A DNA stretch of 64,000 nucleotides from Entomortierella parvispora E1425 (GCA_020891255.1 BQFW01000007.1:62001-126000); one strand, 5' to 3'; positions 23,166-54,537 are shown, numbered from the stretch's first letter. Program-made: numbers and translations. The notes: generated by a model not told the origin, from the letters alone.

Positions 23166-25744
23166 ATGACCTGCCCGTTCCGACGCACATTCATCAACTC
23201 TGTCACGCTTCTTTCTCTCCTACTCCTCCTCTCCCTAAGATTTTCTTCATCCGTCTCGGCAGTTGTTACGAGGCCTCAATATGCCACAGTAAACGGAACT
23301 TTCTATATCCAAGGAGGGTCTCCCGACGGTGGAAATGCGACCAATGCATTCTTCTCCTTGAGCTTGTCAATACCTTGGAACGACACAGCAACTCCATGGG
23401 TAGACCTTCCAGACAATACTTCTGGAATATTGGCCCCTAGCTTATGGGAAAGGACTATGTCACTGACAGCAGACAACAAGCAACTACTCATCTGGAACAT
23501 GAATGCCACCCAGTCGACAATGTACAACATCTCAAGTGGGTGTTGGACCTACAAGGATCTCCCACAGATTTCAAACAGCATCGTAGGCGTAACGGCCTTG
23601 ATTGACCCAACAAGCGCCGGTCTCGGGACATTCTATGTGCCCAATGGTTGCAGGCTTCAGGCAATATCAGTACCATCCGCCACCCAAACAGGAACACCAG
23701 GCCTACCTACACCTCCTTTCCCAACCACAACCCCAGCAATAACCTGGACCATGTGTAAATATGATATGAGCATCAGTAACAGTAGCGTCACCAATGTTCT
23801 GATGATTAGCAATTCGTCAGTGCCAGACGGCGTTCTATATTATTCATTTGTACACTGCTCCGCGCGCAATACGTTCTTACTTTACGGAGGTATTGGGAAT
23901 AACCGTGCGGCTAACCCCAACCTGATCGAGTTCAATACAACTCAGTTGTCGTGGAATCTTATTGTAGGTTGTTTTCGACAGAGTTCAAGGAAGTAGGGTT
24001 ACCGACATTCCCAAACTGATTTTTTTTTTTTTTTTTTTTCTTTTTCGGATAATCGATGTCGCCTAATGACTCCAAATGAAGTCAGCTAAAGGCGAATCCC
24101 CTGGAGACATCAATTCCCATTGCATGGTGCAGAGTAACGCCACATGTTAAAGTTAATTACAACGATAGTAAAGGCATTGCTTCTGACAGGTTCTAATAGC
24201 TTTCTTTGTCAATATGAATAGCTACGGACGGGACGAGGATGATTGTATTTGGCGGAGTCAGCACCACGAATGTAGTATCATCAAAACTCTACATACTTGA
24301 TGTGGCCAATCTAACTTGGACTGCAGGAGCCAATGCTGGGGATGGAAACGCGAGATACGGACACGCCTGCACCACCTACGGCGATAACTTCATCGTGTGG
24401 GGTGGTAAGGAGTTTTTCTTCGATTTTTTTTTTTACGATCATCAAAAAAATTGCGACTACGGATGACCAACTAAAACAACTCTGCTGTCATATTCATGGT
24501 TTTTAGGTCAAAACTTGACGGTGATGAATAACACACCACTAATATACAGCATCCCCGTCAACCAATGGGTTCACAACTATGTTATCCCTGGAATTCCACC
24601 TCCCCTCCCAACAACATCAGTAGAGTCACAAACGCCACTACCCGGATCAACGAATAGCAGTGCCACCCCAGCATTTCCAGGAAAACCGTTTGGTCTTGGC
24701 GGAATCATTGGTTGTGCTGTTGGTGGAGTTGTCATCATTTCAGCCACGGGATTTTTGTTCTACAGGCGACACAGAAAAGCAAAACTGGAGGACTATGACT
24801 TCCCGCCGCTTCCGGAACTGCAAGAGGAGGATAGAGAGCATTTTAGGGTCTTCAGGAAGAAAGGCCTTATAGGTTGGGACGACGACGACGACGACGACGA
24901 CGAGGACAACAACTCGGTGTACGACAGTGACAACAATGGCTTTACAGATAAAAATGCAGCTCTACACCAGAGAGCGAGCAGGAAAAGTCATTTCTCCCCC
25001 ACCCTCCTAGAGTCTTCATCCGCTTCCACACTCGTTGTGCACCAGCCACCACCACCATCTCGTAGAAAGAAGCCCAAAGAGTCGACAACTTCAGGATACC
25101 CATCAGTTGTCACTGTCACGCACCAACTCCTAAGGGAGAGCTCTGCAGAGAGTCCTGAGCCACGACGTAAGCCTATGTCTCAGAGCTCAAGTTTTTCAAC
25201 TGCCAGCACTCCATCCACGCTAAACAATTCGATCGCGACAGTGGTGACAGTGTCACCATTGCCTTCGCCAAGTAAAGTTACATTTAAAAAAGTAACCGAA
25301 ACGATATCGGAGCCACAGCCGTCATATCAGGTCCATTCGAAAGGCCGTGGGAGGACAACACCCTTGATAACCTCCCGGAGTAGCAGTCCAGTCGTGCCCT
25401 CAAGTCGTCATTCCCCTCAGTACGTTCCTGTGGGATACGAGGGACATGATATCTGGGGTAATTGCGGCCAAGAGGGAGTTCGAAGTCCGCAACTGCATAG
25501 TCCAGGGTACGAAACCAGCCCTGCGGCCTGGATGGCCATGATGAACACAATTCACGCAGCCAAAGAGAAGCCCCAATGCCTTAGTTACCATAGGGCGAGC
25601 TCACCCCAAGCCATACTACCAGTAGAACTACGGAATCTCAACAGTAGTGGGTGTGACGATAGCCACAGAGGGCATCGCCCAACTAAGCCTAGACGGAAAC
25701 CAGTCTGGTCAGAGATACCGGATCAGGAGCCAAAAATAAAATGA
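23166..25744 (+). CDS. K1: kelch-like beta-propeller single-pass membrane protein (exons 23166-23963, 24082-24133, 24222-24404, 24507-25744)
   Basis: Signal peptide, YIQGG, FFSLSLSIPW, LLYGG, MIVFGG, GHACTTYGDNFIVWGG, PLIY..NQWV, S/T stalk, TM GGIIGCAVGGVVIISATGFLFY followed by RRHRK, and a tail with SPQYVP and TSPAAWMAMMN. Exon phases join in frame. Confidence 0.85.
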
Positions 25745-26179
25745 ATGACATGACAACAGCTGGAGACTGGTTGGCAAAGTCCAGAGATCCAAACGGTCAT
25801 TGAGCTGTCGACAGACTGTGGACAGACAGACAGTGGATGTGGTTGTGGTTGTAATCAAAAAAGAAAAAAAAACAAAAACGCGTCGCACAGGTGCTCTTTT
25901 AAGATTCTCACTGTTGAAACAAAAAAGCGGCCAAAGGGACGATGGAGGATCCCCGGCAATCGTCCAATCCAAAGAATAGGACATTCAAGTCTTCTTTCGC
26001 TGATCATGCTTTTCTCATCTTTCTTTCGCTTTTTTTTCACATCTTCCTCCACCACCACCACCTTAATCGTTGTCTCCCCATTCGACTGTATAGCTTTGCA
26101 TTAGAACAAGAGACATCAAAGCCTCACAGGTAATCAACAATTCGCCGCTCCTTCACTTTCACCTTTTACGCCTTTAAAG

Positions 26180-26930
26180 ATGTCTCTGATCCACCGCACG
26201 GTTGCCCTTGCATTTTACATCCTACCTTTCATACTGGTCAGCATTCGCGCGGGAAACGGTCAGTCTGTGCTTGCAACCACCTCTGACGCAGTTTACAGGC
26301 CTCACGCTGAACCCTTTATATTCAAGGGGGCACACCTGACCCTACTAGCACCTTCAGATTTTTACTCTTTGAGCTTATTGCAACCCTGGAACGACTCAAC
26401 GCCGCTGCCGAGGATCCTGCTTACCTCTACCAGTGGCGCAGATGCTCCTCATACTACTTGGTGTCTATTGCTAACAGCGCTGACAGGAGCACTCTGATCG
26501 AGTTTGATTTCAGTAGCCCCGGCCTCTCGTACTCGTTCAATGTTCTCCGCAAGGCCTGGTATAAATCCCACCTTCTGGAAACATTAAAGGTGCAGCAGAT
26601 ATTTGGTCTAAATGCCATGGTAGACGCCAAGAGCGACGGTCTTGGGACATTCTATACTCCCAATGAATGTCCAGATATGACTATGAATTTTACGAATTGG
26701 CACCTGCGCAAATAGTACATTTGGCACATTCATATCAAGGTAGCAATCCTGAAGTGTTCACACACCACAATCCCCGCAGTACGTTCCTGTCGGACATAAT
26801 GGATACGGCGTTTGGGGGGGATTCCAATAGATAATACGATACCTGAAGTCCACAACTAGCCAGATCAACCTACGATTCTAGCCCTGCCGTTTGACTGTCG
26901 ATGATGAACGCCACCCGTTCTGGCAATGAA
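26180..26930 (+). pseudogene. K2: internally deleted, frameshifted array member (propeller N-terminus joined to tail motif)
   Basis: Signal peptide, FYSLSLLQPWND and LGTFYTPNEC, then ~100 bp later QSPQYVPVGHNGYGVWG and *SPQLARSTYDSSPAV*LSMMN (stops 26844-26846, 26892-26894). No TM exon remains. Confidence 0.8.
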
Positions 26931-27599
26931 ACCCTGCAGAAACGACAAGACTCCGGAATCTCTATCCACGCATGGATCGAGCTCCTTTGAGGTGGCAACG
27001 AATGACGCCAACAAACATCAAGCACACAGTCATTTAGGAGTCAGTTTACGAGCTGTGTCCCAAATGAAATGAAATCGGAACCAGGACAAATCTGACATAA
27101 AAAAAAACTTGTTTGCAGCTTCCGGATTTTCCAATGGATGGTAAATGTGGTTGGGGCGCATGAGCAAACAAACGACAAGAAAACGCGTCAGTGTCACCGG
27201 AATCGCAGACACACCTGCCTGTTCAGACAGATGAGAAAGTAGGCAGGGTCCCCCGAATATGAAACAGAAAGCATGCTCAACAAGGAGGATGGAATGATGC
27301 AAGTTATTCGGACCATCCGCCGTAGATTTTGCTCTTTTGTCCATCTCTCTTCCTTTCCGCCTTCCATGCTCTACCTCTCTACTCCCCTCTCTCTCTCTTT
27401 CTCTCGCCCATTCCAAATCTCCTTCCGCCCTTGTCAGGGACTGAACTCTCCTCCGCCTGCTCCTCAACTGACCCTGCATCCGTCAACGGGAACCTGTGCA
27501 GACACCGGATAGTATCATCTGTCGATATCTTTCCCATCCTTTTCGTCGCTCCATCCGTTTCCCCCTCATCATTCCTACTTCTTCCTCGTATGTACCACT

Positions 27600-30103
27600 A
27601 TGACTTCCCGCTTCCTGCACTGGCCCATCATTACTGCTTATCTCCTTCCTCTTTTCCTCGTCCTCGTCATTTCTGAGACAAACGCTCAACCATCTACGCC
27701 TGTCGCGGTTGTTAGACCGCAGTACGCGTCGGTTAATGGCACCCTCTATATCCAAGGAGGGGCACCTGATGCTGTTCACCCAGTATCTGCATTCTATTCC
27801 TTGAGCCTGACAAAGCCGTGGAATGACACCGCGCCACTATGGAAGACACTCCCTACCAACTCTTCTGGTGTATTGGCGCCTACCATCTGGATGCAAACCA
27901 TGTCAGCGACTGCAGACTTGAAGCATGTACTTATTTGGGACTTCAGCAGCCCAAATATGTCGCCTTTGTTCGACATCAAAAGCAAGACTTGGACCAACCT
28001 GAATCTGCCACAGGTACCATGGGCCATCATTCACGGTCTTTGGCCACTTATCGACCCAGCAAGCGCTGGTCTGGGGACATTTTATGTACCCAATGGCTGC
28101 CAAGACAGCATTACCTCATACCCACCAGTGTGGTATATGTGCAAGTTGGACTTGACCACTGGTGATATCAACAGAAACATACAAATGAGTACCCAGATAG
28201 CAGGCGTCCTCTATTATTCGTTTGTCTACTGCAGTGCGCGAAACTCAATGATGCTCTATGGAGGATTCAAAACAGACACAAGTAATGTTGCGTCCGCTAG
28301 CCCGAACTTGTACGAGTACAATATGGTTGCAAATACATGGTCGCTCCTTGTAGGTGTTACTTTGTGCCTTTAGCCGAAAATATGTTCTTGGGTAGCGCAT
28401 CTGTGCGGCATTCTGCTTCTTAGTATTAACGCCCAATGGTTTGATATAGACAACCACGGGAACTCCTCCTGGAGATATCAACTCCCACTGCATGGTGCAA
28501 AGTAATGTACCGAATGCATTTGAAGGATAAATGACCGTTGCTGATTGCTGCAGTTGCTAACCAATAGCTCTTGTCTATGTCCTTAGCGTCTGATAAATCC
28601 AAAATGATCGTTTTTGGCGGTGTCAGTATAGGAAACCTGGTCTCGTCAAGACTTTACATCCTTTATCTGGGCAACCTCACCTGGGTACAAGGGGCTGATG
28701 CAGGAACGGAAAACGCGCGATATGGACATGCGTGTAGTACCAATGGCGATAGCTTTGTTGCTTGGGGAGGTGAGGGAATACGCTTTTATTTTGCAGGGCA
28801 ACTAACCGCAATGAGTTGCTTTGTCAGGCTAACAACAATGTTCGCATATTTCATTCATTTAGGACAAAGCTCGGCAATAATGAATAACACTCCCTTGATC
28901 TACAACATCCCGATCAACCAGTGGGTCCATGATTTCGTTGTCTCGGGCCCATTGCCTACACCGATCACTTCAACGTCGATTTCGACGTTAGCACCCACAG
29001 CAACCACGACCACGACCACGACCACAACCATGACCCATACACCATCCTCCACCCCATCCACCGACGTCGCTTCATATCCAAGGTCAACTCTCAGCACAGC
29101 AGGGGTCATTGGTGGCGCTGCTGGCGCCGTTGGTGGCGTCGTCATGATTGTTGCAATTGGAATTTTTATACGCAAGCGGCACAAGAAGGCCAAGTGCAAT
29201 GCCTATCTTCTTCCTCTTCCTTGGCAAAATGAGTATATGAGTTTCCAAAAAAAGCGAGACTTCGATAGGCCAAGCTTAAGGGATGATGGGTATGACGATG
29301 GTGACCAAGACAATGTCAGTCAGCTCCAGAATGGGGACAGAAAAGACGAAGGCGAAACGGTGCCCTACCCTCCATCTTCCTATCTGGAGGCCACCTCTTC
29401 CTCATCCACGCTTGTATATGACCAGACTGTACCATCTTACCAACACCATGTATACGGCGATACAGATTCAGAATCGACAAGCATCTCTGGCGCCGTACCT
29501 CGGCTCTCGTCGACGTCAGGGCCTATTGTAACCCCGCGATTGCGACACCCCACCTTTTCAACCATCAGCGCACCCTCTACCTCATCCAACTCTATCATAT
29601 CCGGGGTACCATTATCGGCCTTATCTCTGCCCATCAACATCTACAACAGAGGGAGGGCTACACCAGGACCTTCGCCGCTAAAGCTGTCGCAGCCAATTGA
29701 CGTTTATAGCTGCGACAGTTCCGACTATTGCCTGTCATCGGCATACCGTCAAGGCAATCCTGAGGTGTTATCATTCTACCAATCTCCTCAATATGTTCCA
29801 ATCGGTTATAATGGTCCAGCTGTGTGGGGAAATGGCCGTCAAGACGAGACACGAAGCCCACAACAACTTGGTTCCAGACACGTCACTAGCCCTGCAGCAT
29901 GGATGTCCATGATGTATGCAGCAAGATCAACCGTCGACGCGCCATATACTCGGAGAAACGGCGGTCTCGATGTCTCTCTCTCAGTGCAATCTGCTAAGCC
30001 TGTTAGGACTGGTGAAAGCGCTTATTTACAACCTCGACAAAGAAGCAGAGAACGATCAACGAGAAAATCTAGACCATACAAGGACGGACACAAAGAAGGC
30101 TAG
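27600..30103 (+). CDS. K3: kelch-like single-pass membrane protein (exons 27600-28349, 28450-28501, 28587-28769, 28863-30103)
   Basis: Same architecture and intron phases as K1. Poly-Thr stalk, TM GVIGGAAGAVGGVVMIVAIGIFI followed by RKRHKK, tail QSPQYVPIG..RSPQQLG..TSPAAWMSMM. Confidence 0.87.
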
Positions 30104-30553
30104 AGATACGGGGGTCACACCTTGACTGTCGCTTTCCTTTCTGCACAGATAATGTGGTTCTTGAGAAATAAAGTGCAAAGAGACGCGTCGTACAAGGGGT
30201 GTCTTTGCTCTTCAAAATTTACAAGCACCGTTGTTTCGCTTTGTTGTGCCCGAACACAAACGAGAGCGTCAGCTCAAAGAGGCAGGTCCACTTCCTGCTC
30301 CTAAACTGAAAGAAGTTAACGGTCCAGCAGACGTCCAATTTGCTTGAAAGATCCAGCTCAACAATTGTGTTTCTGTGGTTCAAACGCCCGTGACTATTTG
30401 CTTTTGGTTCATCCAGTCCTTTCGCCATTCCTTTTTCTCTCACCTTCCCTTCCTTGCCAGCAGCTTCATCCATATCCCACCTCTTTCAAACTGAAGATCA
30501 CCCTTGAAATCCGTCTTCCTCCACCTCTTTTCCTACCTTGATTCAACCGCAGG

Positions 30554-33072
30554 ATGGTTATGTTTCATAGCAGGCTCAAAAGATCCGTCGGGTTCCTGAC
30601 AGCTCTCTTGGCCTCTCATATCACACAAAACATCCTTTTTATCTCAGCTTACAGCCCTACATTAGTTTACAACTCCCAATATGCAACGATGAATGGGATC
30701 CTGTATGTTCAAGGTGGCGCTCCGGAGTTGTCGATCAGCCCCAGTGCATACAATGAATTCTTTTCGCTGAGTTTGACAAAGCCATGGAACGACACGGCAC
30801 CCCCATGGCAGGCTCTTCCCATCAACACTTCTGGTGTAGTGGTTCCAGCTCTTGCGGGTGGAGGGATGACTCCGACCCCAAATAACAGTAGTTTGGCTCT
30901 TTGGAATCCAAGCCTAAACCCAATAACCTGGGTTTTTCATCCCAAGAATAATACTTGGACCACGATAACCTATACACTTGGCTCTCTGCAGCTCAACATG
31001 GGAGGCACGGCTGTGATCGATCCTGAATCTGTGGACAAGGATTATGGGGACCTCTACGCACCGAATGCTTGCCGAGCCGTCAACACAAGCTATAACGCCA
31101 TGTGTGACTTCAGGGCCCCCTATTTTTTCAACGTTCTTCCAATGCCACCCTCGCCAAACCCCACCGATACAGTTGGTTTTTCCTTTACGTATTGCACTGA
31201 GAGAAAATCAATTCTGTTCTATGGCGGTCAGGGATACACAGGCGTCATCAATCCATATTTGTACGAGTATGTACCATCAGAGCAAATGTGGTCATTTCTT
31301 GTAGGTACAAAGGCCTGTGGGTCTGATGAAATAGTCGATGACACCTGCGCAATGATGCCGGGTCATTTTGTCGAGATTATGGGCACTGTCGCCGTCTAAA
31401 GCTGACTCGCTTACCTGTTATTGTCTTTTTTATCTTTATGTGAGCACAGACCCCACCTGGCAATTCGCCTGGAGATGTGAGCTACCATTGCATGGTGCAG
31501 AGTATGATAGAAGACACGCTCATTCCGAAAAGCTGTTATCTGCGACAGTTAGGACCGAGCACTAATGAGTTTCATTCTCACCATAGCTACAGATGCCTCC
31601 AGAATGATCGTTTTTGGTGGTGTGAACGCCCAGAACCAGTTTTCTTCGCGATTGTTTTTCCTTAACATGGTTAACTTCACTTGGACTGAGGGTGCCGATG
31701 CTGGTGCCATCAACGCCAGGGCAGGCCATGTCTGCGCAACCAATGGAGACAGTCTTGTCGTTTGGGGAGGTAAAATATCAGTTGAATGCCAACTTTCCTA
31801 GAAAAAACAACATATTGGTAATCTATTGATTCCACTAAACAATCTCTGTACCATGTCATCTTCGATTTGGCTTAACGCAGGGAGGAACACTACCATCAAT
31901 GTAATCAAGGACAAAACACCATTAATTTATAACATCCCGACAAACCAGTGGGTCCACGACTTTGTTGTGTCGGGCCCACTGCCGACATCAACGACCAATG
32001 TAACATCGACAGTAGCCACAACGGCGTCTGCTCCGACAACGACATCCACCCCGCCTGTCGCTTCGCCCACTCCGCCAAAAACCTCCAATTTGGGTAGTGC
32101 CATTGGTGCTATTGGTGCCGTCAGCGTCGTCGCTGCTGCTGTTGGATTTCTCTTTTTCAGACGACACAGAAGAGCGAAGAGCTGCCCATCTCCTCGATCA
32201 GCTACACTATCACATCAAAGTATCTTTGGCAAAACAGGAAGGTTCTTTGGGAGGAGTGCCAAAGATGATGGTGGTTACAGGGACGAGGTTCAGTCACAAT
32301 TCACTTCGAGCAAAGGTGCCAGAGAAACACCCTATCTGTCTCGCACTTCATCTGCGCCGTTCATGAGCCAGTTCATATCGCCATCATATCGACTGTCTAA
32401 TGAACATGAACTCGAAGCAGGTGATTCATTTCACCCAAACAAGGGAGATCCTCAGGACTCGATATCTAGCGCGCGTGGTGAATCCTTGCCCTTCGGACCA
32501 GATTCCTCCCTCAGGACCATGGTACCACAGTACTCAATGGCCACCAGTCCCAGTAAGTCACCTCTTCCGTCCAAGTTCCCAATAGTCAATATTTACAGTG
32601 CCCTCATCTTCTAATGTTGTTTACTTCCATAGATCCACCGCATCAACTCGGATACTACTTAGTTGACAAGGATGGGTATCTGACCTATAGAACGGGTCGC
32701 GATGATAATTCTTTTTATACGCCGCATGGCCACTCACCTCAGTTTGTACCGGGGGGGTCCAGTGGATACAGTGTATGGTCTGAAGGCGACCGGTTTGATC
32801 CCCGGAGCCCACAGCAGCTTGGGCCTGGATATGGGACGAGTCCTGCAGCTTGGATGGTAAGTATGAACATGGCCAGCCCCAGGAATGACCCTCGGTTTTC
32901 TAGTCGGATTGCTAGCGCGATTCCCCTATCGAGTCACAGCTCATACAGCCCATCTCCAACTGGACAGCTGGCTGTTCAGACAGAGTCGGACTTCATGCTA
33001 AAGAAGATAAAGTTGTTGAGGGCACAGCATGAACTCGAGATGGAAAGAGTCCGGCTGGAGCAGGAGTCCTAG
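30554..33072 (+). CDS. K4: kelch-like single-pass membrane protein with an extra tail intron (exons 30554-31300, 31450-31501, 31587-31769, 31881-32552, 32633-33072)
   Basis: Same architecture. An 80-nt phase-1 intron at 32553-32632 (GTAAGT..CTAAT..CATAG) joins the two ORFs in frame. Tail has SPQFVP, RSPQQLGPGYGTSPAAWM and KKIKLLRAQHELEMERVRLEQES. Confidence 0.83.
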
Positions 33073-33880: not shown

Positions 33881-36400
33881 ATGGAGCGTCTACTCCATAG
33901 CATCTTCTTTGCTGTTGGCGCTGCTCACCTATTGTTGTTGATCTTTTCTGTCCAAAACACCCCTTTTGTGTCAGCAGCTCCGCCAATTGTTGTTACCGGC
34001 TCAAGATATATCACCGTAAACGGGACTCTCTATGTGCAGGGAGGGGGTTCACTCTACGCTCAAGGTGGGGCATTCACAGACACCGATGGGACTACAGCCT
34101 TCTCATCTTTGGACATGTCGGTACCCTGGAACCAAACATCGCCTCCATGGAAGGCCATCGTTGCCCCTGCTGGTTTTCTTACCCGAGATATCATATACCA
34201 GGGACTCGCAGTGACTCCAGACAAAACTCGACTGGTTTTCTGGGGATCCTTTAATGCGCCACCCGAAGCTGGATCCTTGAGTATACTCAATATCCCGAGC
34301 AATAGTTGGAGCAGCTTGACTGTCACACAGAACCCCAATCTGACGAGCTGGGGCATTTCCGCCGTAATCGACCCCACGAGCGGGGGCATGGGAGTTTTGT
34401 ATGCTCCAAGTGGTTGCACAGAGCAGATTACTGGCACAGAGAATGCCATTCCTGGATTATGCATGATTGGATTAGACAAGAAGACAACTACTTATCAAAC
34501 AATGTCCAGACTCCTCGTACCGAGTGGCATCGCTTATTATTCTTTCGTCTATTGCACGCTGAGGAAGACAATGCTTCTTTATGGGGGAGCGGGTGCGAAC
34601 AATGAGCCCAATCAGAGTTTGTACGAGTTCTCCCCTTCCAACTCGACTTGGTCGTTGCTTGTACGTTAGTGCTTCTCAACTCTTTGTCTTTTCGGTCCCC
34701 GATGCGCAAGAAATCGTTGCAAAAGAAAGAAGTCGTGGGATGAATAACTAATAGCTTCACTGATCTCCCACCATAGCAACCACAAGGGACTTCCCCCGGC
34801 GATATCCAGCGTCATTGCATGGTAGAGAGTATGTCGCAAGTCTGTTCCCAATTCACTTCTGTTAGACAGGCACCAAAAAAAAGTCGAACTCTAACCTTCC
34901 TTTCTTCGCTCCATAATAGCCACAGATGGCACCAAGATGATTGTGTTTGGTGGGATGAACGTCGGACTGCAGGTGTCGGCACGTCTTTCTATTTTCCATA
35001 TCAAGAACATGACCTGGACAGACGGGGCCGATGTGGGAGCAGCCAATGCCAGAATGGGTCATGTCTGTGCAACAAACGGCGACAGCTTCATTGTCTGGGG
35101 AGGTAAGGAACGCAATCGCATCGATCTTCTGACAAGATATCTTCTAACATCAATTGTGCTCGTCCTGATAGGACTGACACTGCAGAACGGCAAAGCTGTG
35201 GTGGTGAACAATGTCCCGTTGATCTATAACATCCCAAAGAATGAATGGGTCCACAACTTTGTAGTTACAAACCCTCCACCTCCAACCCTCTCAAATGCGA
35301 CATTGACGTCGACAATGACAGGACCCATGCCTTCTTCATCAGACAATGCCTCTTTATCCTCTCCCTCGGAAAAGTCCTCCAACGTGGGGGCCATTGTCGG
35401 TGGAGCTGCGGGAAGCATTATCGCTGTCGCCGCCATCGGATTTTTCATGTACAGACGACGCAAGGGAAACGGTCTATCTCACTCGAAAAGGTCTGGGGAT
35501 GGCAATCTAAGAAGATCGATGATTCTGAACGGCGGCGGAAATGACATTGAAGACGACAAGGATGCATGCGGCAACCATTCCGGCGCAAACGCAATTCAGC
35601 TCCAAAGTGAATCGGTCCAACGCTCAGTCGATTCATATTCTCACTCTCCACCTCATTCTGTGCAACAGTTCCAGTCATCCCCACTGCAGACTAAAAATTC
35701 GTTCGCGATGCATGGGGGTAACTCAAGGGAACTCAATCCGGAGATTGATATGAGAGGACACCACGGAAGGTCGTCAAGTGAGTTAGGGTCGCCGCGGTTT
35801 TCAGGATCCAAGTTTTCAAATCCACCACCCCCTTTTCAATCAACCTTGTCACTGTCTCCCGCCGGCAGTCCGCAGGCGTACCTTGGCCCCTTTCCAATGG
35901 ATCAACAAAACCATCCGTATTATTACGACAAAGGGAGGAGTGACTTCCCAAGTCCTTTCAGGGGTCTTGATCATACCAATATCCTGTACAGCGATTATCC
36001 TCAATTCACTCCAATTGGATTGGATTCACAGGGTAACCGATTTGATCTCCGAAGTCCTCAGCAGCCAGGACCAGGAGTGGAGACGAGCCCGGCAGCATGG
36101 ATGGCGGCGATGAACACACGCAACTCTTTTGGCAATTCCCATAGATTAATTAATCATGGATCGCACGTCAGTGGCCATATTGGTGGCCTTGGTTCATACT
36201 TCCCGCCTCCACCAGGACTACAGTCACCAGCAGAGCCAGAACCAGACCTGCTCCAAAAGAAGTTGATGCTGATGAAGGCACAACATGAGCTAGATGTGGA
36301 GAAGATGCGGCTAGAGCAAGAATCACAGCGACATTTAGTTGAGCGGCAGTTGGTGGAGAGGCAACTTGGTCCAGCAGCGGATAAGTGGAACCACATGTAG
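33881..36400 (+). CDS. K5: kelch-like single-pass membrane protein (exons 33881-34660, 34777-34828, 34920-35102, 35172-36400)
   Basis: Start MERLLHS; YVQGG, LDMSVPW, MIVFGG, TM VGAIVGGAAGSIIAVAAIGFFMY followed by RRRK; tail RSPQQPGPGVETSPAAWMAAMN, SYFPPPP and KKLMLMKAQHELDVEKMRLEQE. Confidence 0.88.
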
Positions 36401-39797: not shown

Positions 39798-39820
39798 GCG
39801 CTGGCCAATCAACTCCGACA
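39798..39820 (+). promoter_or_regulatory. 23-bp element containing a CCAAT box (GGCCAATCA), identical upstream of K7 and K8
   Basis: gcgctggccaatcaactccgaca at 39798-39820 and 43251-43273. Confidence 0.5.
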
Positions 39821-40388
39821 AAAGTTGGGCTGAAAAACTTTGGATTGCAAGGAGGGGAGGGTTTCCCACAGAAGTTCTTGCTACAGGATCTGTGGTTCTT
39901 CAGACTCAGAAGGCAGGTCAATTACCGAGTTCTGCCATGGAGGGTTCTATGGTTCGAGGTATCCATGACGGTTGCTGGCACTCTCAAGATTTAACGAAAA
40001 AGATGATCCAGAGAGCGTGTGGTTTTGTTTTCCTATTTTGTTGAGGTGGCGGGTCGCACAAAGAGTTTTTTGTTATTGCTCATCCGTCTGTGTTCAGGCC
40101 AAAGGGAGAGAGGCGAGATTGGCTTGCATATCAACACGACAGAGCAGTGCCATTGTCGAAGTGAAGCCGTGAAGGAGGACGGTACATTTCTTTCAGCGGC
40201 CGTCTTCCCGCCTTTCCCCTCTTTGTTTCGTTCCATTTCCCTGTCAGGAACACTCCCTCCCCTTCAAAGCTCGGTGAGAGAGCTGGCCCGTCTCCTCGCC
40301 CCCTGTCCATTTTCCAGGACGACTCTCCTTTCCATCCAACAACACTGCCTACTCTTTTCAACGATTTTACTCCTGCCTCAACACCACC

Positions 40389-43015: not shown

Positions 43016-43818
43016 TCTGCTTTCTGGCGGCTGGTGAATAAGATCATGTATAGCTTCTGTGGTAGAAAACTTCCACCGTAGTAATATCCAGTAGTCCAGT
43101 AAAGTAAATAACGATATCCAAGAACATGGAGAGCGCCAATGGAGTCTATTCAATTTCATCCAACGGCTTGGCTCTCAGTGTTGCATGCTCCATTTCTTGC
43201 TGCTGGCCATGACTGAATCAATTTCATCTGGGGGGTGACACAGAAAACATGCGCTGGCCAATCAACTCCGACAATCACACTGGAACTAAGATACTTGTGC
43301 TGACGGGGGAAAGGGGTGAGGGCCAGAAGTTGTTGATACATCCATATTCCTTCAGTATGAGGACCAGGTCATGTTACCGAGAACAGTCATTTAGGGCCCG
43401 AGGGTTCGATGTATCCACGGTGGTTGATGACCTTTCAAGATGTGATGAGAAGATGATCCAGAAGTGCGTGTGGTTTGTTCTATTTTATTGTTGAGTGGAC
43501 ACGTCGCACAAAGATTTTTTTTTTTTTTTGTGTTATTGCTCACCCGTCTGTGTTCAGGCACAAAGAGAGATGCAAGATTGGTTTGCATATCAGCAGTGAA
43601 AGAGGACAGTGCATCTCTTTCAGCGGCCCTCTTCTCGATTTCTCCCATTTCTCCCCTCTTTGTTTCCTTCCTTTTCCTGTCAAGATCCCTCTTCCCCTTC
43701 AAAGCTCGGTGATAGAGCTGACCCGTCTCCTCGCTCCCTGTCCATTCACCAGGACTCTCTTGTCCGATCCAAGACTGTTCGCTCTTTTCAACGTCTTCAC
43801 TCCTGCCCCAACGCCACC

Positions 43819-46471
43819 ATGGAGTGTCTGCTCCATCGCGCGCTCATCTTCATTGCCAGCACTTTTCCTTTGTACCTGGTCCTTTTTGCCCTGCAAAATA
43901 TCCCTTTTACATCATCGCAATCACCTGTTGCGGTCGTCGGCCCCGGATATGCCACGGCAAGCGGCAAACTATATATCCAAGGCGGTCTGACGATTATTAA
44001 CGATCTAATTAATCCTTTAGCCGCAGAAACATCAGCTTTCTTTTCCTTGGACTTGACAATCCCCTGGAACGTCACGTCCCCTCCATGGAAGTCTATCAGT
44101 GTCGGCAATGAATTTCCCGTCGCAAACAGTTACCAGTCGATCGCTGTTACTCCGGATAAAACCCGGTTGGTCTTTTGGGGATCCTTTAGTCCCCCTCGCA
44201 ATACTTCTTTACTTGTATACAATATCCCGAACAATACTTGGAGCACTACGCCAATCATACCGCTCCTGAAGCCGGGCCAATTGACGGCAATACCTCTGGG
44301 CAACTATATGTCGTCAGTGATCGATCCAGCATCCACAGAAAAGGGTTTAGGGGTTCTGTATGCACCAAGTGGTTGCTCCGACACCACTGTCAGTTATCCC
44401 CCAGTTGAAGAAGGCCTCTGCCAGACGGATTTGGACAAGAAGACATTCGCCGTCGGCTATATGCCTGGAGGCCAGGTGCCTGCAAACGTCCAGTCCTATT
44501 CCTTCGTATACTGCTCAACACGGAAGTCGATGATGCTATACGGAGGTAACGGTGGAACCAACCTGATCAATCCAAGTTTGTACGAGTTCAATCCATCAAC
44601 TGTGTCTTGGACATTACTTGTAAGTCAGTCCTTTCTGCCTGGAGTCTTCTTCCCGGTAGATATTTAAAAGAATCTGTAGGACGGGAACTAATAGGTCTGC
44701 CTTTTTCTTGATACAGCAACCGCAGGGAGGAGCCGCTCCTGGAGATGTCTCGGGCCATTGCATGGTCGAGAGTACGTCGCCAATGTGCTCTAGTTTACTT
44801 TTTGTTTGTTGCAATGGATCCTAACCATATTTTCCTCATTTGCAACTGCAGCCACAGATGGTTCGAAGATGCTTCTGTTCGGGGGCATGGATATTACAGG
44901 GAAAACCTCATCACGTCTTTTTATTTTGAATCTCAACAACATGACCTGGACAGAAGGAGCCGATATTGGAGCGGCCAATGCCAGATCAGGTCATGCCTGC
45001 GCTACCAACGGTGACAGTCTTGTTGTCTGGGGGGGTAAAGAAAATATTCACTGTATTTCGGAAGTCCTGATCTTGTTTTCTTGCCAAAGCAACCACTAAC
45101 TTCGATCATGGTAAGCTAGGGATAATCACCGCGAACAACGCGGCCGTGGTGGTAAACAATATCCCATTGGTGTACAATATTCCAAACAACACTTGGGTCC
45201 AAAACTTTCTCGTCTCCAAAGCCCCTCCCTCTCCAACATCGGCATCGTTGGCGCCTACCTCCACCCCAACAAACACTATCACGCAGCCGCCTCCTCCTGA
45301 AGAAAAATCATCCAATGTGGGTGCTATTGCCGGTGGTGCTGTCGGATGTGTTGCAGCCATTACCGCCTTCGGATTTCTCGTCTACACATATCGCAAGAAC
45401 AGGAGAGATAGTGATGATCGCTCATCACAAATGAAACGGTCGGAAAAAGACAATAGCTCGCGATTCGGCAGAAGAAACAACAGAAACGATGACGATGAGG
45501 AGGATGACACAGATCCTTACAGTGACTACCTTGGTTCACGTGCGATCCAGCTTCAGAATGCGTCGACACAGCACACAGTCGACCCGTACTTTGCTTCGTC
45601 ACTCCACTTTTCGCAGCAGTTCCAGCCATCTTCATCAGCAATGTCGCCGCCACTTCACCAGCATCTGCCTCCCCAACCAGAGATGCAAGCCAGAAACACG
45701 CCGCTCTCTTACGGAGGTAGTCCTGCCGATATGAATCTTGGCACGATGAACCCAAGCGGAGTATCCTCGGGCGAGCTAGATTCACTCCGGTTCTCGGGGA
45801 TCAGTTCGTCTCCACCTCCCCCTTTCGCCTTCCCCCCACAGCCATCGTCTGTGTCATTGTCTTTGAGCGGTAGTCCACAAAGAGAGGAGGGTTTCGTCAA
45901 CTTCATACCAACAGATTCGCACGAGCAGCCAATTTATTACGATAAAGGAAAGAATGCCTTCTCTACCGGCAGTCCACAAGCATCTTTTCCAAACTTATCA
46001 GTAGGCCAGTCGACTTACTACGATGGACGCAACAGTGTTCTCTCTGGCTCCTTCAAGAGTCCTGATGCCCTTTTAACCAGTACTCCGTACAGCACCTCTC
46101 CTCAGTACATCCCCATTGGATCGGACGGACAGGGTCTCCGCGCGGACTATCGAAGTCCACAACAGCTCGGACCCGCAATTGAGACCAGTCCAGCGGCTTG
46201 GATGGCGGCCACAAGTGCGCGTAACTCTATCGGTAACCCTCACAGAGTAGTCAGCCATGTGTCGGATGTCAGTGGTCCAGTTACCAGCCGCGGTTCATAC
46301 TACCCTCCTCCACCAGGGCATCAATCGCCAGCGCCAGCAGAGTCGGACTTGATGCAGAAGAAGCTGAAGCTGATGAAAGCACAGCACGAACTGGATTTAG
46401 AAAAGATGCGATTGGAGCAGGAGGCACAATTGCAGATAGTCCAGAACCAGCTTTTTCAAAGCAGTGGATGA
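43819..46471 (+). CDS. K8: kelch-like single-pass membrane protein (exons 43819-44619, 44717-44771, 44852-45034, 45120-46471)
   Basis: Start MECLLHRAL; closest relative of K7; 55-nt microexon; tail RSPQQLGPAIETSPAAWMAA and KKLKLMKAQHELDLEKMRLEQE. Confidence 0.88.
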
Positions 46472-47389: not shown

Positions 47390-49851
47390 ATGCTGAAAAC
47401 GTTAGATTTGGATGTTCGAAGGAGACTCTCCAGAAGAATTCTCCATTTCGGGTTCGTTCTTATCCTCGTCTTCCTCTCTTCTACCAACGCCGGAACTATC
47501 TCCCCTCCCTCAACGTCTAGGGGTGAATATGCCACTGTGAACAACATCTTTTACGTCCATGGAGGATCGCGCTCCGCCGATGGCACCCAGTTCACCCCTG
47601 AGATCTTCTCCTTGGACCTGACTGTTCCCTGGAACGACCAAAGTCCGCCCTGGTCGGCTCTGCCCTCAGGTCTTGCACCCTCGCCTTTTCAGCAGTCCAT
47701 GGCTGTCATGGGGGACAAATCTGCTCTGGTTCTCTGGGATGCACAGCATTTTCAGATAACGACCTTTTTGCTCAGCAGCAATGTCTGGATGCCTCCGTAC
47801 ACGTACTCGACCAGCAATATCAATTGGGGCGGGCTAAAGGCGGTGATCCCCCCACCAGCTCCTCCTGGTGTCCTGGGTACCATATACATGGTAAACCCTC
47901 CAGAAAAGAAGATAGCAGAACTCTGTTCCAACTTTTTATCGTTCTGTGATACACAAAAATTGACCATGCGTTGTGTCTTCCTTTTTTTTTTGACAGCCAA
48001 ATGGTTGTTGGAACCTCAGCTCGACCGCCCCTTCGTCCTTGTGTTCTTATAATCTTGACACGCAGGCCTGGATACAAACCCCGATGCCCACCGGGTACCT
48101 GCCTACGGATATTAGCTACTACACCTTTGTGTATTCAAATTTAAGAAAGAGCATTGTGATGTACGGAGGATATAGCGTCAGTCAAAAAGAAGGACCGAGT
48201 CCCTATCTCTACGAATTTCTCCCAGCGACAAAAGTCTGGAATTTCCTTGTACGTTATCTTTCCCCCATTTCACCAAGAAAGGTCGTCTTGAGTGGATAAA
48301 AGTATACTCATGATTTGTCTTCCCTTCTCTTTTCTTCATTCTTGGTCATAGCAACCGCAGTCTAAAGGGACACAGCCTGGCGATATCTACTTCCACTGCA
48401 TGGTTGAAAGTAAGTTGACTCGATACTCCATTCTTTGATTTTCCTTCAGCTGCAATGAAAATCGTGCTTTTTTTTATTGTCTTGTCTTTCTCGCCCTCTA
48501 AAATCAAAGCCAGCATCCGATTTTAGCAAGATGATCATGTTTGGAGGTGCTACCGGGAATTTTTCTTCAATCACTTCGCACGGCAGCATTTACATATTGG
48601 ATCTGACCACCCTCACCTGGTCCCAAGGAGTGGATGCCCCTGCATCCGAATTCCGATTTGGACATTCGTGTGCAATCAACGGAGACAGTTTCATTGCCTG
48701 GGGAGGTAAGAAAGAGAGAAAAAAAGCCCTGATCATTTTCTTGTATGATTAATGCGCTAACGTGGAGAGTTTGGTTCACAGGTTCAACCTTGCAGACCAT
48801 GATGTCCAGTACCCCATTAATCTACAACATCCCTCTGAATCAATGGGTCCACGATTTTGTTGTTTCGGGGCCTCTTCCAACAAACGCCAACAGCACTGGT
48901 GCCTCTCCCTCAGGAGGCGCTGGATCGCAGCCATCAGGGAGTCCGAGTACCGGGCCGCCGTCTACAGAAAAGTCATCTGGAAAGGGCGGAATCATTGGAG
49001 GCGTTATCTGCGGTGTGATTGTCTTGGCTGCTGTAGGCTTCTTTTTCTACAAAAGAAGCCAGAAGCATCAACGCATTCCTCCATTGACAGAGGTGACCAA
49101 GGGACAGGACGGCAGAGAGTATGTCCCTCAAGTGGATGACGGCAGTCAGCCTCAAAAGACTCAATGGATCCCGCTTCAAGAAAGTGAGAGGAGCCCGCAG
49201 ATGCAGCCATCCGACTTTTCTTATGTTAAAGATGGCTCCCCCTTGACCTATTTGCAACCGCCCGTAATCCCTTCAGAGCCGCCCCAATCACCGACTACAA
49301 GTGCATTCTCCCCTTACCCTGACAGACCTACATATCAGGCAAATAGTCCGCACATGCCAACGTATCAAGCGACTGGCTCATATCCAGCGTCGCCGGTCTC
49401 TTCAGTACTCTCGCCAACGGTGTATGCGACCGCTTACTCGAAAGAGTCTCCCCCCTCTCCACCCAAGCTATCGCCTCGACCAGCACAAAATCCCCAAGGA
49501 GTCATGGGCGGTTATGGAAGCGCACCCCAAACTCTCTTAATCACAGGCAATAATATCAACAGTCCTACAATTGAGCTTCGAGGTCCACAACAAATGGATC
49601 CAATGTCAATATCGATGATGGACGGTCCGAGTGTCGCAGCCCCAAGCGGTAGAAACGTAGCTTATTTCCCCCCTCAACCCCATCCTCTATCACAGATATC
49701 TTTCCAAGCTATGCCAGAGCCCATTGTGGCAGCGAACGAAGAGATGATGGTCAAGAAGCTGGCACTGATGAAGGCCCAGTACGAGTTTGAGTTGTCGCGG
49801 ATCCGACTAGAGCAAGAGTCGTTGGTAGAAAGACAGCGAAGACAGGCATAA
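47390..49851 (+). CDS. K9: divergent kelch-like single-pass membrane protein with an extra propeller intron (exons 47390-47890, 47997-48248, 48352-48409, 48514-48705, 48782-49851)
   Basis: FYVHGG, FSLDLTVPW, IYM|PNGC, MIMFGG, TM GGIIGGVICGVIVLAAVGFFFY followed by KR. SPAAWM is lost, but NPQ/GPQ, YFPPQP and KKLALMKAQYEFELSRIRLEQE are retained. Confidence 0.82.
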
Positions 49852-50217
49852 AGAACAAACAGATCCACGCAGAAAAATAAACTAGAAAGCTCCACGGAGA
49901 AAAAGGAACTTTTGTCGACCCACTCCCTCGCCCTGCTTGTCTGGCATATGAAAAGAGCAACGACAACCGTGCACATGCAGACAGGTAATTTGGGAGAAAG
50001 TGCAAGAGGCGAAAGGGGGAGAAAGAAGTCAAGTTTTTCTTTCTTTTTTGATCTCCTCTTTTGTCTGTCTTTCTGTCGCTGTCTATCTCTGTCCATCCGT
50101 CTCCATCACAGCTAGCCGTTTGACAGGAGAATGGTCCTGCAGTTGATGTCTGACTCGACACGTCTTTAACAATAACAGCACTCATATCTAATCTATAACG
50201 GGGAAGTATTGGTAACT

Positions 50218-52425
50218 TCAACTCGATCTTTCACCTACTTCTCGTTTTCCTTCTACACGCCCCACCTCAGCAGACGAGAGGGCGTGCGGATCGGTGGAAG
50301 ATGCAGAAAAGTCCCCGAAAGGTATTACCACCTCATTCCCATCTCGCAATTGAGGATTTCTGTATTTTGTGGCGACAGAGGTGGTCGAGGATGCCGCGCC
50401 TTCCATATTGAATCCTGCAAGATGGCTGTCTCTATTACTGTCATTGTTGTTGTTAGTAGTGGTGGTGTTCCCACTGTCGCTCCCGTATTCTTGAGCATCA
50501 ATATCCATTGAAAACTCGTCAGGGATGTTGTGGAAAGACACTCGTTTCCGTAGCATGTTGTAAAACAAGACGTCATCCCGTACCTGAGGCGCTTTATAAA
50601 AGTTCGACAGGGCAGGGCCCTTGAATTAAAAGCTCCATCGTCCTCCCGGTTGGCAATATCCGGCTTTGTCTGTGCCGCCGTCTCTGGCTCTAGTGGAGTC
50701 ATTGAAAAGCGCTGGGGTTGATGTAGAGACCGCATCATCATCTGGGGGGGGATCTCTCCAACATACCAGAGAGGAGTGCCAATGCAGGTTTTGGCTTTGG
50801 CGGTGGTGGAGGGGGTGGCTGATGTAGCTCTGTTGACTTCAGCAGCCGAAGCCGCCTCTGCTGCCAGTGTCTTGTGGCGATTAAAGACATAAAAGATAAT
50901 GATGCCCAGCAGCAATGGCAATCCCAAAATAAGCCCCACGGTTGGATTTGAATGACTTTCTCCATAGTTGTTGTCATTCTCTCCACCCCCTCCTCCATCG
51001 TCAGGAATGGAACTGGGACTAGCCCGAGCAGTGGTGTTTGATGTGGAAGCAGGTGATGTGGGCGTAGAAGTGGATGCTGGGCTACTTGGAGTGAACTGAG
51101 TTACCCATTGTTGCGATTGTATATTGTAGATGATAGTGGATCCCAATAACGTCCCGTTGTTGTCTCCTGGAGCGGAGTGCGTTGGTCACAGAAAAGCAAG
51201 AGAAGGACATGTCAGTGAGACACCAGAAAAAAAAAAGGAGGTTCGTGTCGACATCGCGATTTTTTTCACCACCCGAAGCCACAAAGTGATCTCCCGATAC
51301 GGCGCATGCCATCCGAGCTCAAAACAGTGAGCTATCCACTGGGGCCCCAGATGTCCAGGCCAGAGAAGCTACGTCCAACGTGTAGATCCCTCCTGCTGCC
51401 ACTTGACCTCCCGTCGTGTAGCCACCAAAGACAACCATTTTGGTCCCGTTGTAGGCTAGACAAAAAAAAAGAAATATATATATATATAAAAAGTCAAGCC
51501 CTCGCTTCGCGTCACAGAGGCAATGCTTGTTTTAACTTCAAGAAAGCAAAGTTACCTGGAACCATGCAATGACCATGAACCGATCCGGGGTTCATGCCGG
51601 TGGCCATCTATTGAACAAGAAACAAAGAGGTGTGAATGACGGAGTGCGTGAGTGAAACGAATCTTTGATAGCCAGGAGGGGCAGAAGGAGGAGATCCACC
51701 CGCTCTTCATCGCTGTGATTTTACCGCTGTCAAGGTCGTCCATTGGTTCAAGCTGGGCATATACTCTGCGAGATTAGACTCGGTTTCTCCAACCACTTCG
51801 CCTCCAGAGACAAGAAGTGTTGACGGCACTGTGCTCCAGACAGCAGTGAAACCTGACATTGGCGCCCCAGCAGGACTGGGAACCGGTGCCCCGACAGCCC
51901 CCGTGAGTGCATCGATAGTCAGCATCGCCCCACCTGCATAGCCCTGAGGAATGAGAATCGTCCCATACACCGGATGCATGGCGCCTCCTAAAGGTACCGC
52001 CCCTTGGCCCAACAGAGTCATATTCAGCTTGAACAGGTTTATGGCCCATAGGTTTGCAGCAATGGCTTAAGCCATGATGGACGAGGACCCAAAGTCAACC
52101 AGGATGAGTTGTGTCTTGTCAACACTTGAAATTAAGAGCTGACTGGCGCTGGGAGGTCCGTTTTGGAGTTGTTTCCATGAAGGGTTGGAAGCCTGCCAGC
52201 TCGTTGTCAAGTCCAAAGCATAGAATTGGGATGAGACTGCAATGGGAGTGCCGCTCTGTGTTTGGATCAAAGTCCGCCTCCTTGGATATAGAGGGCCTTT
52301 TCATCCAAGGTAGTCCATTGAGGTGATGTGACTGGGGAGGGTGCCTGACCTGGGGTTTGAGCAAGTGTCAGGGCAAGGAGAGAGTAAAAGAGGAAAAGGA
52401 AGTAATGTATCGCAGCGGTGGTCAT
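50218..52425 (-). pseudogene. K10: inverted, pseudogenized kelch-TM family member (AYNGTK subfamily)
   Basis: MTTAAIHYFLFLFYSLLALTLAQ signal peptide, LYIQGG then a frameshift near 52270, in-frame TAA at 52067-52069, 52-nt microexon MATGMNPGSVHGHCMVP, AYNGTKMVVFGG exon with TGA at 51319-51321, TM VGLILGLPLLLGIIIFYVF, and a tail frameshift near 50620. Confidence 0.8.
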
Positions 52426-52911
52426 TAACACTGTGGCTGGTCCACTTGGGCCGTGTGATTAGGAATGAAAGGGGAGGTGGGCAAGGCAGAAGAGGATGAC
52501 AAGCTAGGGGAAGTGAAGGAGATCCAAGTCTTGACACTCGTGATGATCATCCGGGATACCAAGGGTGCACAGGCACCTCACCTAAAAATCAATTGGCAAA
52601 GTAGACGAAACGAGAATGGGAATCGACAAACGGAGCGCCGAATAGAAGCGTCCGATAGAAGTAAGAGAGATCGTCGAGCCGTTTCCTCCGTTCTTTTTTT
52701 TCTATTCTGTGGCGAAGTTGTTTGGCTTTGCCTGGCTAAGCATCCAAGCCTTAGCGTGCATGGCTGTTACAGGTTCCTTCGCCTGATTCTAAAGAATGTG
52801 TGGACATAGCGACAGGGGCAACGTCGTTGCGTGAGTGCAGGGAGACAAAAGGAGTCGATGCGTTGTTCTTTCCTTCCATGACACCGCCCTCTGTGGTCTG
52901 TACCGCCAAAA

Positions 52912-54537
52912 TTGAACCTTTCTCTTCACTTTAATTCCCTGTTTTTTGCTGTACTGCCTTGCATTGTGCACCGACTATTCGACACGCTCCAGGCCCCAAG
53001 ATTGGGGTTGACGCTTTCTTTCTTTGTCGTCCTTCTCCTCCTGGACCAACTTTTCTTGATCGCACCGTTTTCATACGCTTCAGTCCATTCAACATTTCCC
53101 GCACCGAGTTCCAATTTCCAGCGGGCCGTTCTTGAAGAGAGGACGCCCTATATCCAAGGCGGGGACTTTCTGGTTACCTTTTCGACTGCCTTCTATACCC
53201 TGGACTTGACCAAACCTTGAGCCGATTCGAGCCCAGCCTGGACCAGCTTGCCCAATGGGCCTGCAGTCTCTTCACAGTCAATGGTCATCAATCAAGCCCC
53301 GGCCTGTCTTGAGATTTTTGCGGGCGATCCTACACATCTGGCTGTGTTCAATCTTATGGCAGGCTCTTGGGACAACTGAGATGCCTTTCTAGACACGACC
53401 AATCAATTCTTGGCTGGTACCAGAGCGGTGCTTGACCCCACAACAGGCAACCTCATCTGCACGGAGGGGTCGTGTATTTTGACGGCAGCCCAGTCACTGG
53501 TCTATGGTGACGCGGTCTGGAGTACCCTTCGTGGGTCAGTGCTGCAGTTTGGAGGCCGTTCGATTGCTGGCAACGCCAGTGTGGAGACTTTTTCAGAGTT
53601 TAGACAGTCATTATCTTCAGGGGAAGGCGCGTGGTCAGATATCGCGACCACAGGCTCATCCCCTGGTCCGTCCGTAAACCATTGCATGGTCTTGGCTTAC
53701 AATGGTACGAAACTGGTCGTATTTGGGGGTTATGACTCGGCGTTCTTGGATCTCACCACCCTGGTGTGGACAGCCAGCCGATTCGTTTGGGGAGGTAATC
53801 CTTTTTTTTTTTTTTTTTTGCATCTCGTCTCGGACACGAGAGACTAAGCAATTCCTCCTCGTTTTGAAAAATCAAAAAAAAAAAAAAAAAAAAAAAAAGA
53901 AAAATAGGCGACAGCAGCCATGCCCGGGCTTCGAATGTGCCTCTCATCTACAACATGCAGACGGACGAATGGGTCCACCAGTTCAATCCAGTGTCCACGA
54001 CTGGATCCTATACTTCTAGACACGCGGCCATGATTACAGTTTTTTTACACGTTTGTGTTTATCTGCATCGTCCTCGATAGAACGCTCATCTGGCGCCAAA
54101 TGACTATTCCACAACAAACGTTGGCAGAAGACGGCGCAGAAGAAGAAGAAGTAGTAAGTCCCAGGCGATCCTGGCCAGGGTCGTTGAAGAGGCCAAAAGG
54201 AGGTGCAGCTAATCTCTATGCTTCAAAGATGAACCCTGCTAGACAGCTCTCGTCAGAGCCATCGGTCGCGATACCGTTACAACCTTGGTCAATTTCGACA
54301 GAGCCCCAGTCCTGGACACCTCGACCACCTCCAACATCAGAGCAGCAAGCACAATACGATTCACTTGATGGAGACAGCTTGCGTATCCCAGAGAATAGCC
54401 ACAACGTCGGGATGACAAAGACGCAGGCATTGTCGGCATCTGTTACTTTGACACCTTCCTCGATTAATTATAATAAAGGGGTTCTAAACCAGGCTGCTGT
54501 CAACTGTGCAGCCTTCGATAGAGTGAGTACCCCTTGA
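52912..54537 (+). pseudogene. K11: pseudogenized kelch-TM family member lacking the two introns that flank the microexon
   Basis: YIQGG, FYTLDLTKP* (W to TGA, 53218-53220), TGA at 53377-53379, contiguous WSDIATTGSSPGPSVNHCMVLAYNGTKLVVFGG, retained intron after VWGG, PLIYNMQTDEWVHQF, degenerate TM, and tail ORF 54055-54537. Confidence 0.75.

Follow-up and report, generated by a model that had tools for sequence, protein, structure and literature searches.

A tandem array of kelch-propeller, single-pass membrane protein genes in Entomortierella parvispora, one branch of a large and functionally undescribed family

Background

Extracellular six-bladed kelch propellers on single-pass membrane proteins are found in the metazoan type I proteins attractin and MEGF8, and attractin additionally carries CUB, EGF, PSI, C-type lectin and laminin-EGF domains. 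We analysed a stretch of 64,000 nucleotides from the soil fungus Entomortierella parvispora E1425 (GCA_020891255.1, BQFW01000007.1:62001-126000; referred to as the window, with positions counted from its first letter), in which positions 23166-54537 hold a tandem array of 11 units, K1 to K11, eight of them intact and three decayed (K2, K10 and K11). The intact units encode propeller-bearing membrane proteins, whose likeliest role among those considered is that of a receptor or sensor, with a probability of about 0.45. The Attractin/LZTR1 beta-propeller family (PF24981) scored above its cut-off in full-length K7 (63.5 bits, cut-off 50) and attractin was a Foldseek match with a template modelling score (TM-score) of 0.61. 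Since the identity was only about 19%, the likeness to attractin is one of shared fold and not of orthology, and the tails differ.

Plant leucine-rich-repeat receptor-like proteins (LRR-RLPs) are kinase-less, single-pass proteins with a repeat-built ectodomain, encoded in tandem clusters that include pseudogenes. The array resembles them in each of these respects, but its ectodomains are built from kelch repeats and its tails are long, whereas those of the plant proteins are very short. The yeast cell-wall integrity sensors Wsc1-3 and Mid2 and the signalling mucins Msb2/Hkr1 combine a signal peptide, a head that senses ligand or force, an O-glycosylated Ser/Thr (S/T) stalk, a single transmembrane helix and a non-enzymatic tail that recruits partners (PMC9024836, PMC6685044). 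The array proteins would share this functional logic without homology: their head is a kelch propeller in place of the Cys-rich WSC domain or mucin of those proteins, and their tail is three to four times longer and has unrelated motifs. Neither the transmembrane region nor the whole protein matched the Pfam families WSC, Mid2 or SKG6, even at E<=10.

Cytoplasmic fungal kelch proteins and galactose oxidase have the kelch fold in common with the array. The cytoplasmic Kel1, Kel2 and Tea1 possess neither a signal peptide nor a transmembrane helix, and galactose oxidase is seven-bladed and has a copper site and a DUF1929 domain, all three of which are missing from the array proteins. The best Swiss-Prot fold match was the functionally uncharacterised Kelch repeat-containing protein ARB_01230 of Trichophyton benhamiae (D4AYG1; E 9e-16, TM-score 0.71), which, compared by propeller fold (residues 50-433 of 668), was 17% identical.

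Protein architecture

All eight intact proteins begin with an N-terminal hydrophobic signal, seen as a hydropathy peak and predicted to be a signal peptide. Their ectodomains contain 3-13 sequons (N-x-S/T) per protein, including a PWNxT site in K1-K8, and 4-6 cysteines at five aligned positions, one of which is missing from K9, with an extra cysteine in K1. A stalk composed of 40-62% S/T/P and a Gly/Ala-rich transmembrane helix (at about residues 402-435) come straight after blade 6, and are followed by a basic stop-transfer cluster and a tail of 267-362 amino acids (aa). This order of parts had been proposed in an earlier reading of the window from sequence alone (hereafter the sequence-only reading) and was present in every intact protein. 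Because the sequons and conserved cysteines lie N-terminal of the transmembrane helix and the basic cluster lies after it, a type I topology is predicted; the supported prediction for the whole is a type I single-pass membrane glycoprotein of the secretory pathway, lacking a catalytic domain. The transmembrane helix is rich in small-xxx-small motifs, and the region weakly resembles the transmembrane segments of syndecan, ErbB1 and EphA2.

The ectodomain is a six-bladed kelch propeller in the AlphaFold2 model of K7 residues 30-395, which was built with 51 homologues and reached a predicted local distance difference test score (pLDDT) of 87.8 and a predicted TM-score of 0.87. Full-length K7 also matched PF24681 in Pfam (91.7 bits, cut-off 50). 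The best Foldseek matches in the PDB were the six-bladed KLHDC2, LZTR1 and NS1-BP (TM-scores 0.64-0.70); KLHDC2, LZTR1 and Keap1 were matched with probability 1.00 and TM-scores of 0.6-0.7, and the best PDB folds are peptide-binding kelch propellers. A profile search of PDB sequences gave 63 matches, among them KLHDC3/2, specifier proteins and LZTR1.

Going by some public names, the proteins would be galactose/glyoxal-type oxidases, either secreted or membrane-bound: relatives have been automatically named "Galactose oxidase", and "Galactose oxidase, central domain" is the label given to the kelch families in Pfam. However, the modelled propeller is six-bladed, the best 50 Foldseek matches in the PDB were all six-bladed kelch proteins other than oxidases, and the 63 profile matches included no galactose oxidase. 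Pfam detected neither DUF1929 (PF09118), the C-terminal domain that provides a copper ligand in such oxidases, nor Glyoxal_oxid_N (PF07250), and the 51-sequence alignment had no conserved His pair. The near-invariant columns of that alignment (G, D, L, W, P, Y, F, R and C) are residues of the kelch scaffold, so that the test for a conserved oxidase site was negative. The sequence-only reading had named such a site, with its copper ligands, as evidence that would count against it; it was looked for and is absent, and the reading stands on this point. An oxidase of the AA5 type is effectively refuted by the blade count, the missing domains, the PDB matches and the lack of a copper-ligand pattern.

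Cytoplasmic tail

A Pfam scan of full-length K7 found neither an enzyme domain nor any other Pfam domain in the tail, and a PDB profile search with the tail returned nothing significant. The AlphaFold2 model of the K7 tail was disordered (pLDDT about 50) except for a short AAWMAAMN helix (about 67) and a terminal helix of 37 residues (88-98). The description of the tail as long (roughly 250-400 aa), disordered and free of enzyme domains thus agrees with what was found.

Alignment of K1-K9 revealed a juxtamembrane basic patch and three blocks, SPQ[YF]xPxG, RSPQQxGPGxETSPAAWM and SY[YF]PPPPG, the second of which was present in seven of the eight copies, the RSPQQ/AAWM block of K9 being degenerate. 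The tails fall into two classes: a C-terminal KKLxLxKAQHELDLEKxRLEQE segment, modelled as an amphipathic helix, is found in K4-K9 only, and K1 and K3 lack it. Homologues from Gryganskiella, E. lignicola, Mortierella sp. and soil metagenomes carry the same blocks, and the K1-type tail end recurs in one metagenomic protein. A word-based search with the last 150 residues for the tail module on other ectodomains returned members of this family only.

An alternative reading is that the proteins are surface adhesins or cell-wall-associated glycoproteins. The propeller would then bind wall or substrate polymers or partner cells (in hypha-hypha contact, mating or contact with bacteria), and the protein would be mainly structural or adhesive, with a tail that merely anchors or recycles it. 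A signal peptide, many sequons and an S/T/P stalk are typical of wall-spanning fungal glycoproteins, tandem expansion is common among adhesins, and the ESM Atlas neighbours include an Ascomycota cluster automatically named "Cell wall anchored protein". Yet a tail of this length that is under purifying selection, shares motifs across genera and ends in a helix exceeds the needs of an anchor, and the proteins have a transmembrane helix instead of a glycosylphosphatidylinositol (GPI) signal. We consider this alternative unlikely.

Some tail features match known short motifs as patterns. The [FY]PPPP core fits the class-I EVH1 ligand consensus, as established for that motif, and the Y-x-P-[IV] block (SPQ[YF]xP[IV]G) fits a Yxx-hydrophobic pattern in K1, K3, K6, K7 and K8. 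An acidic run lies 50-70 residues past the transmembrane helix in K1, K7 and K8, with shorter acidic stretches in K3 and K5. Sortilin consists of a lumenal beta-propeller, a single transmembrane helix and a tail. The match to this layout, the acidic clusters and the Yxx-hydrophobic pattern would suit endomembrane cargo or sorting receptors of sortilin/Vps10-like logic, in which the lumenal propeller binds cargo and the tail signals cycling between Golgi, endosome and plasma membrane; moreover, a gene with an EH domain, of endocytic type, adjoins the array and also adjoins a family member in another genome. Against this, sorting receptors are usually few and conserved and do not occur as hundreds of diverged paralogues with variable blades, the adjacency may be coincidence, and the tails of K1-K9 contain no NPF motif (nor any PPxY motif). 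A sorting function is considered rather unlikely.

Array layout and gene models

A 487-aa open reading frame (ORF) at 34937-36400, used as a query, retrieved five adjacent public E. parvispora proteins, EMPS_04827-04831, which correspond to K4-K8 and mapped back onto the window with 94-100% identity per aligned piece. A tblastn search with the K7 protein (EMPS_04830) then delimited nine co-oriented units and two decayed ones. Consecutive starts in K1-K9 are 2.95-3.57 kb apart, and 1.4 kb apart after the K2 remnant (start at about 26186), in keeping with the spacing given by the sequence-only reading (3.0-3.6 kb and 1.4 kb). Gene models were built by scoring GT..AG pairs junction by junction. 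Eight units gave complete ORFs of 687-796 aa with canonical GT-AG introns, as had been claimed, and share a layout of exon 1 (about aa 1-258), a mini-exon of 52-55 nt, an exon of 183-192 nt and a long last exon. The units are as follows.

K1: 23166-25744, plus strand; intact, 756 aa, four exons, introns 23964-24081, 24134-24221 and 24405-24506; tail without the C-terminal helix
K2: 26186-26939, plus strand; remnant of a K1/K3-type copy with stops and frameshifts and an internal deletion of about 1.6 kb
K3: 27600-30103, plus strand; intact, 741 aa, four exons, introns 28350-28449, 28502-28586 and 28770-28862; tail without the C-terminal helix
K4: 30554-33072, plus strand; intact, 697 aa, five exons, introns 31301-31449, 31502-31586, 31770-31880 and 32553-32632; EMPS_04827
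K5: 33881-36400, plus strand; intact, 747 aa, introns 34661-34776, 34829-34919 and 35103-35171; EMPS_04828
K6: 37081-39626, plus strand; intact, 756 aa including the signal peptide, introns 37861-37975, 38028-38119 and 38303-38370; EMPS_04829
K7: 40389-43015, plus strand; intact, 789 aa, introns 41163-41256, 41309-41383 and 41567-41654; EMPS_04830; ectodomain and tail modelled
K8: 43819-46471, plus strand; intact, 796 aa, introns 44620-44716, 44772-44851 and 45035-45119; EMPS_04831
K9: 47390-49851, plus strand; most divergent intact copy, 687 aa, five exons, introns 47891-47996 (putative), 48249-48360, 48410-48513 and 48706-48781
K10: 50325-52458, minus strand; pseudogene of the family's other clade; reading frame shifted after blade 1, with in-frame stops inside blades 2 and 5
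K11: 53050-54537, plus strand; pseudogene with two or more in-frame stops; blade 5 is shortened, and a recognisable transmembrane helix and intron 1 are both lacking

The models of K5, K7 and K8 were letter-identical to EMPS_04828, EMPS_04830 and EMPS_04831. K4 requires its fourth intron, located in the tail (GTAAGT..TAG), and the same junction is used in the public model. The extra intron in exon 1 of K9 (GTAAAC..CAG, with a polypyrimidine tract ahead of the CAG) is a candidate drawn from sequence. Other public models deviate from ours. EMPS_04829 (643 aa) starts from a Met inside the K6 model and so leaves out that model's 113 N-terminal residues, with the signal peptide and blade 1 (window 37081-37419), and EMPS_04827 omits the 52-nt exon 2 of K4 (31450-31501). 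K1, K3 and K9 were not returned by word-based protein searches and may be unannotated or differently modelled. A search for a promoter motif shared across units found CT-rich tracts only, none clearly above shuffled controls.

Duplication history, decay and selection

Ectodomain identity between neighbours was 53% for K1/K3, 63% for K5/K6 and 60% for K7/K8. A maximum-likelihood tree resolved the intact copies as (K1,K3),(K4,((K5,K6),(K7,K8))), with Shimodaira-Hasegawa-like approximate likelihood ratio test (SH-aLRT) values of 90-99, mirroring their chromosomal order; K9 and the Gryganskiella array fell within the same strongly supported clade. As the tree follows gene order, the array grew by sequential local duplication.

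In K2, the signal peptide and blades 1-3 are kept, followed by a direct jump into the SPQYVPVG tail block. K10 and K11 are arranged head to head, and both carry two or more in-frame stops as well as a frameshift or deletion; they are the divergent pseudogene pair that had been described after the nine units. The blade-5 stop of K10 sits at a conserved Arg region, and K11 contains A/T homopolymer tracts at about 53790-53900 that translate as runs of F and K. That neighbours are closest relatives, as the sequence-only reading had it, was upheld by identity and tree for K1/K3, K5/K6 and K7/K8, but could not be shown for K10/K11. The latter two share a single 50-nt inverted match (74%), and their fragments are closer to members of the family's other large clade than to K1-K9.

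Synonymous divergence (dS) between the duplicates was about 0.7 to more than 1, and the ratio of non-synonymous to synonymous divergence (dN/dS) was 0.10-0.31 in the propeller and 0.19-0.35 in the tail. It follows that the duplicates are old and have been kept by purifying selection and hence, on present evidence, that this is not a fast-turnover recognition locus. The proposed tandem birth-and-death process is therefore retained as regards local duplication, with a tree that matches gene order, and the presence of pseudogenes (K2, K10 and K11), but the turnover has been slow. Variation, indels included, is concentrated in the part encoded by exon 1, namely blades 1-3, and blades 4-6 are highly conserved, which accords with the variable ectodomains of the sequence-only reading.

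The decay of three of the 11 units, together with the lack of any RNA run in the public run listing, could suggest that the array is largely non-functional or silent DNA, made up of remnants that are rarely or never expressed. This is very unlikely, as the eight long multi-exon ORFs are unbroken and their splice sites conserved, every region has a dN/dS well below 1 and the motifs are kept across genera.

The DNA runs of the source sample contain the gene. Four further public runs labelled as this species yielded almost only short K7/K8 fragments (window 40300-46290), mostly at less than 90% identity; the mini-exon, the NIPLxYNIP region and the terminal helix are examples. Either strains with this label have strongly diverged or the array differs among them.

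Distribution of the family

The number of members returned by a profile search of 1.84 billion representative sequences rose from 545 at E<=1e-30 to 2384 at E<=1e-10 and to 8783 at E<=1e-3. The source organism was looked up for ten of them, and all ten belong to Mortierellomycota (Gryganskiella, Mortierella, Linnemannia, Podila, Entomortierella and Haplosporangium). A transmembrane helix follows the propeller in 129 of the best 154 members, with a median tail of 197 aa, and the nearest non-self ectodomains are 32-35% identical. Kelch-transmembrane proteins of Mortierellomycota, such as KAG0043238 and KAG0043239 of G. cystojenkinii, KAF8971992 of E. lignicola and entries from Linnemannia and Mortierella, are homologous to the array proteins in propeller, stalk and transmembrane helix. 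They have the same exon order and lie in co-oriented tandem arrays, as seen in E. lignicola and G. cystojenkinii, and some possess the same tail motifs and C-terminal helix. They differ in that their ectodomains are 25-37% identical to that of K7 and in that tails vary widely across the family.

The locus belongs, as one branch, to a very large family that is visible in public data, is functionally undescribed and has only Mortierellomycota among its sampled members. It had been presented as an undescribed system of its own; the isolation has to be given up, as the array is one cluster among many in public protein sets, but the lack of a functional description held, since the literature searched contained no functional study of fungal kelch-ectodomain transmembrane proteins. 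Relatives are publicly named "hypothetical protein", "Galactose oxidase" or "MEGF8", and secreted kelch proteins of ascomycete pathogens were merely listed as unknown in a 2008 paper (PMC2409186).

No protein kinase domain was found in the tails of K1-K9, in 96 family tails or in 26 long relatives. Nor did the 96 tails or the 26 long relatives contain any other enzyme domain. Most of the long relatives examined carry two propellers and look like fusions of tandem gene models, and one is fused with a neighbouring EH-domain gene. At the fold level, AlphaFold DB cluster neighbours include entries named "Protein kinase domain-containing protein" with an N-terminal kelch propeller, and the feature neighbours in the ESM Atlas come from Ascomycota, Basidiomycota and Zoopagomycota; both are leads only.

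Neighbouring genes

The upstream flank (19313-22650, plus strand) holds an EH-domain gene, pieces of which (19313-19700) match the EH region of a locus in another Mortierellaceae genome (GCA_015847195.1, L003:9009-15031). There, the gene immediately upstream of an EH/EF-hand gene is a family member, and the public model P0125 joins the kelch-transmembrane gene with an EH domain (residues 570-646). The P0125 protein is probably a gene-model fusion, and the kelch/EH adjacency is the same as in the window; the EH-domain genes of the two loci are similar at the level of the domain only. The downstream flank (54693-57545, minus strand) holds a 950-aa ORF with a terminal UBA domain. EH and UBA domains are both features of Ede1-type endocytic scaffolds. 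No synteny of the flanking genes was detected with two relatives' loci (L001 and L002). Elsewhere in the window, a 1026-aa ORF (10520-13600, minus strand) has an F-box-like domain followed by WD40 repeats, an architecture of the Cdc4/Met30 type, and an ORF at 16467-17846 (plus strand) has a NUFIP1 domain near its C-terminus.

Functional interpretation

We favour the reading of K1-K9 as kinase-less, cell-surface scaffolds of a receptor- or sensor-like kind. The propeller would face the lumen or the outside, and its variable half (blades 1-3) would be the binding site for an external ligand, either a protein or a glycan. The stalk is probably O-glycosylated, the transmembrane helix could permit dimerisation, and the tail motifs and terminal helix would attract cytoplasmic partners that serve signalling or the endocytic/actin machinery. 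Such a logic would be comparable with that of the yeast Wsc/Mid2 sensors or of plant receptor-like proteins.

The receptor-like part of the sequence-only reading is sustained by the architecture, the constrained and motif-bearing tail, the variability of blades 1-3 and the non-catalytic propeller, but it is weakened by purifying selection and the age of the duplicates. "Receptor-like" is thus a plausible but unproven label. Several points count against it. Gene-wide dN/dS (0.2-0.35) indicates purifying and not diversifying selection, and the duplicates are old. No RNA run is publicly listed, and the ligand-facing surface is a suggestion drawn from sequence variability; transcription, plasma-membrane location, ligand and partner are all putative. 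The tail motifs ([FY]PPPP and, in only some of the copies, Yxx-hydrophobic) were read by pattern matching, and the 96 family tails contained no recognised signalling domain and no recurrent Pfam domain. The kinase-bearing relatives, finally, are leads that rest on database names.

In the textbook picture, fungi sense their surroundings through G-protein-coupled receptors, histidine kinases and a few Wsc, Mid2 and mucin sensors, and we know of no place in it for large single-pass receptor families. The host lineage is known for intimate bacterial, algal and plant associations. It is a speculative and rather doubtful possibility that Mortierellomycota, and perhaps Mucoromycota, hold a massively expanded and undescribed class of kelch-ectodomain receptors that sense microbes, hosts or self, a counterpart of the plant RLPs and receptor-like kinases in which the kinase-less K1-K9 would be RLP-like, possibly alongside kelch-transmembrane-kinase relatives. 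With hundreds of diverged clusters, tandem arrays, a half-variable propeller and conserved tail motifs, the family offers a concrete and testable candidate for surface recognition. Should its members instead be adhesins or trafficking receptors, they would still make up a major uncharacterised share of the secretory proteome of these fungi, one that public records misname "galactose oxidase", "MEGF8" or "LZTR1".

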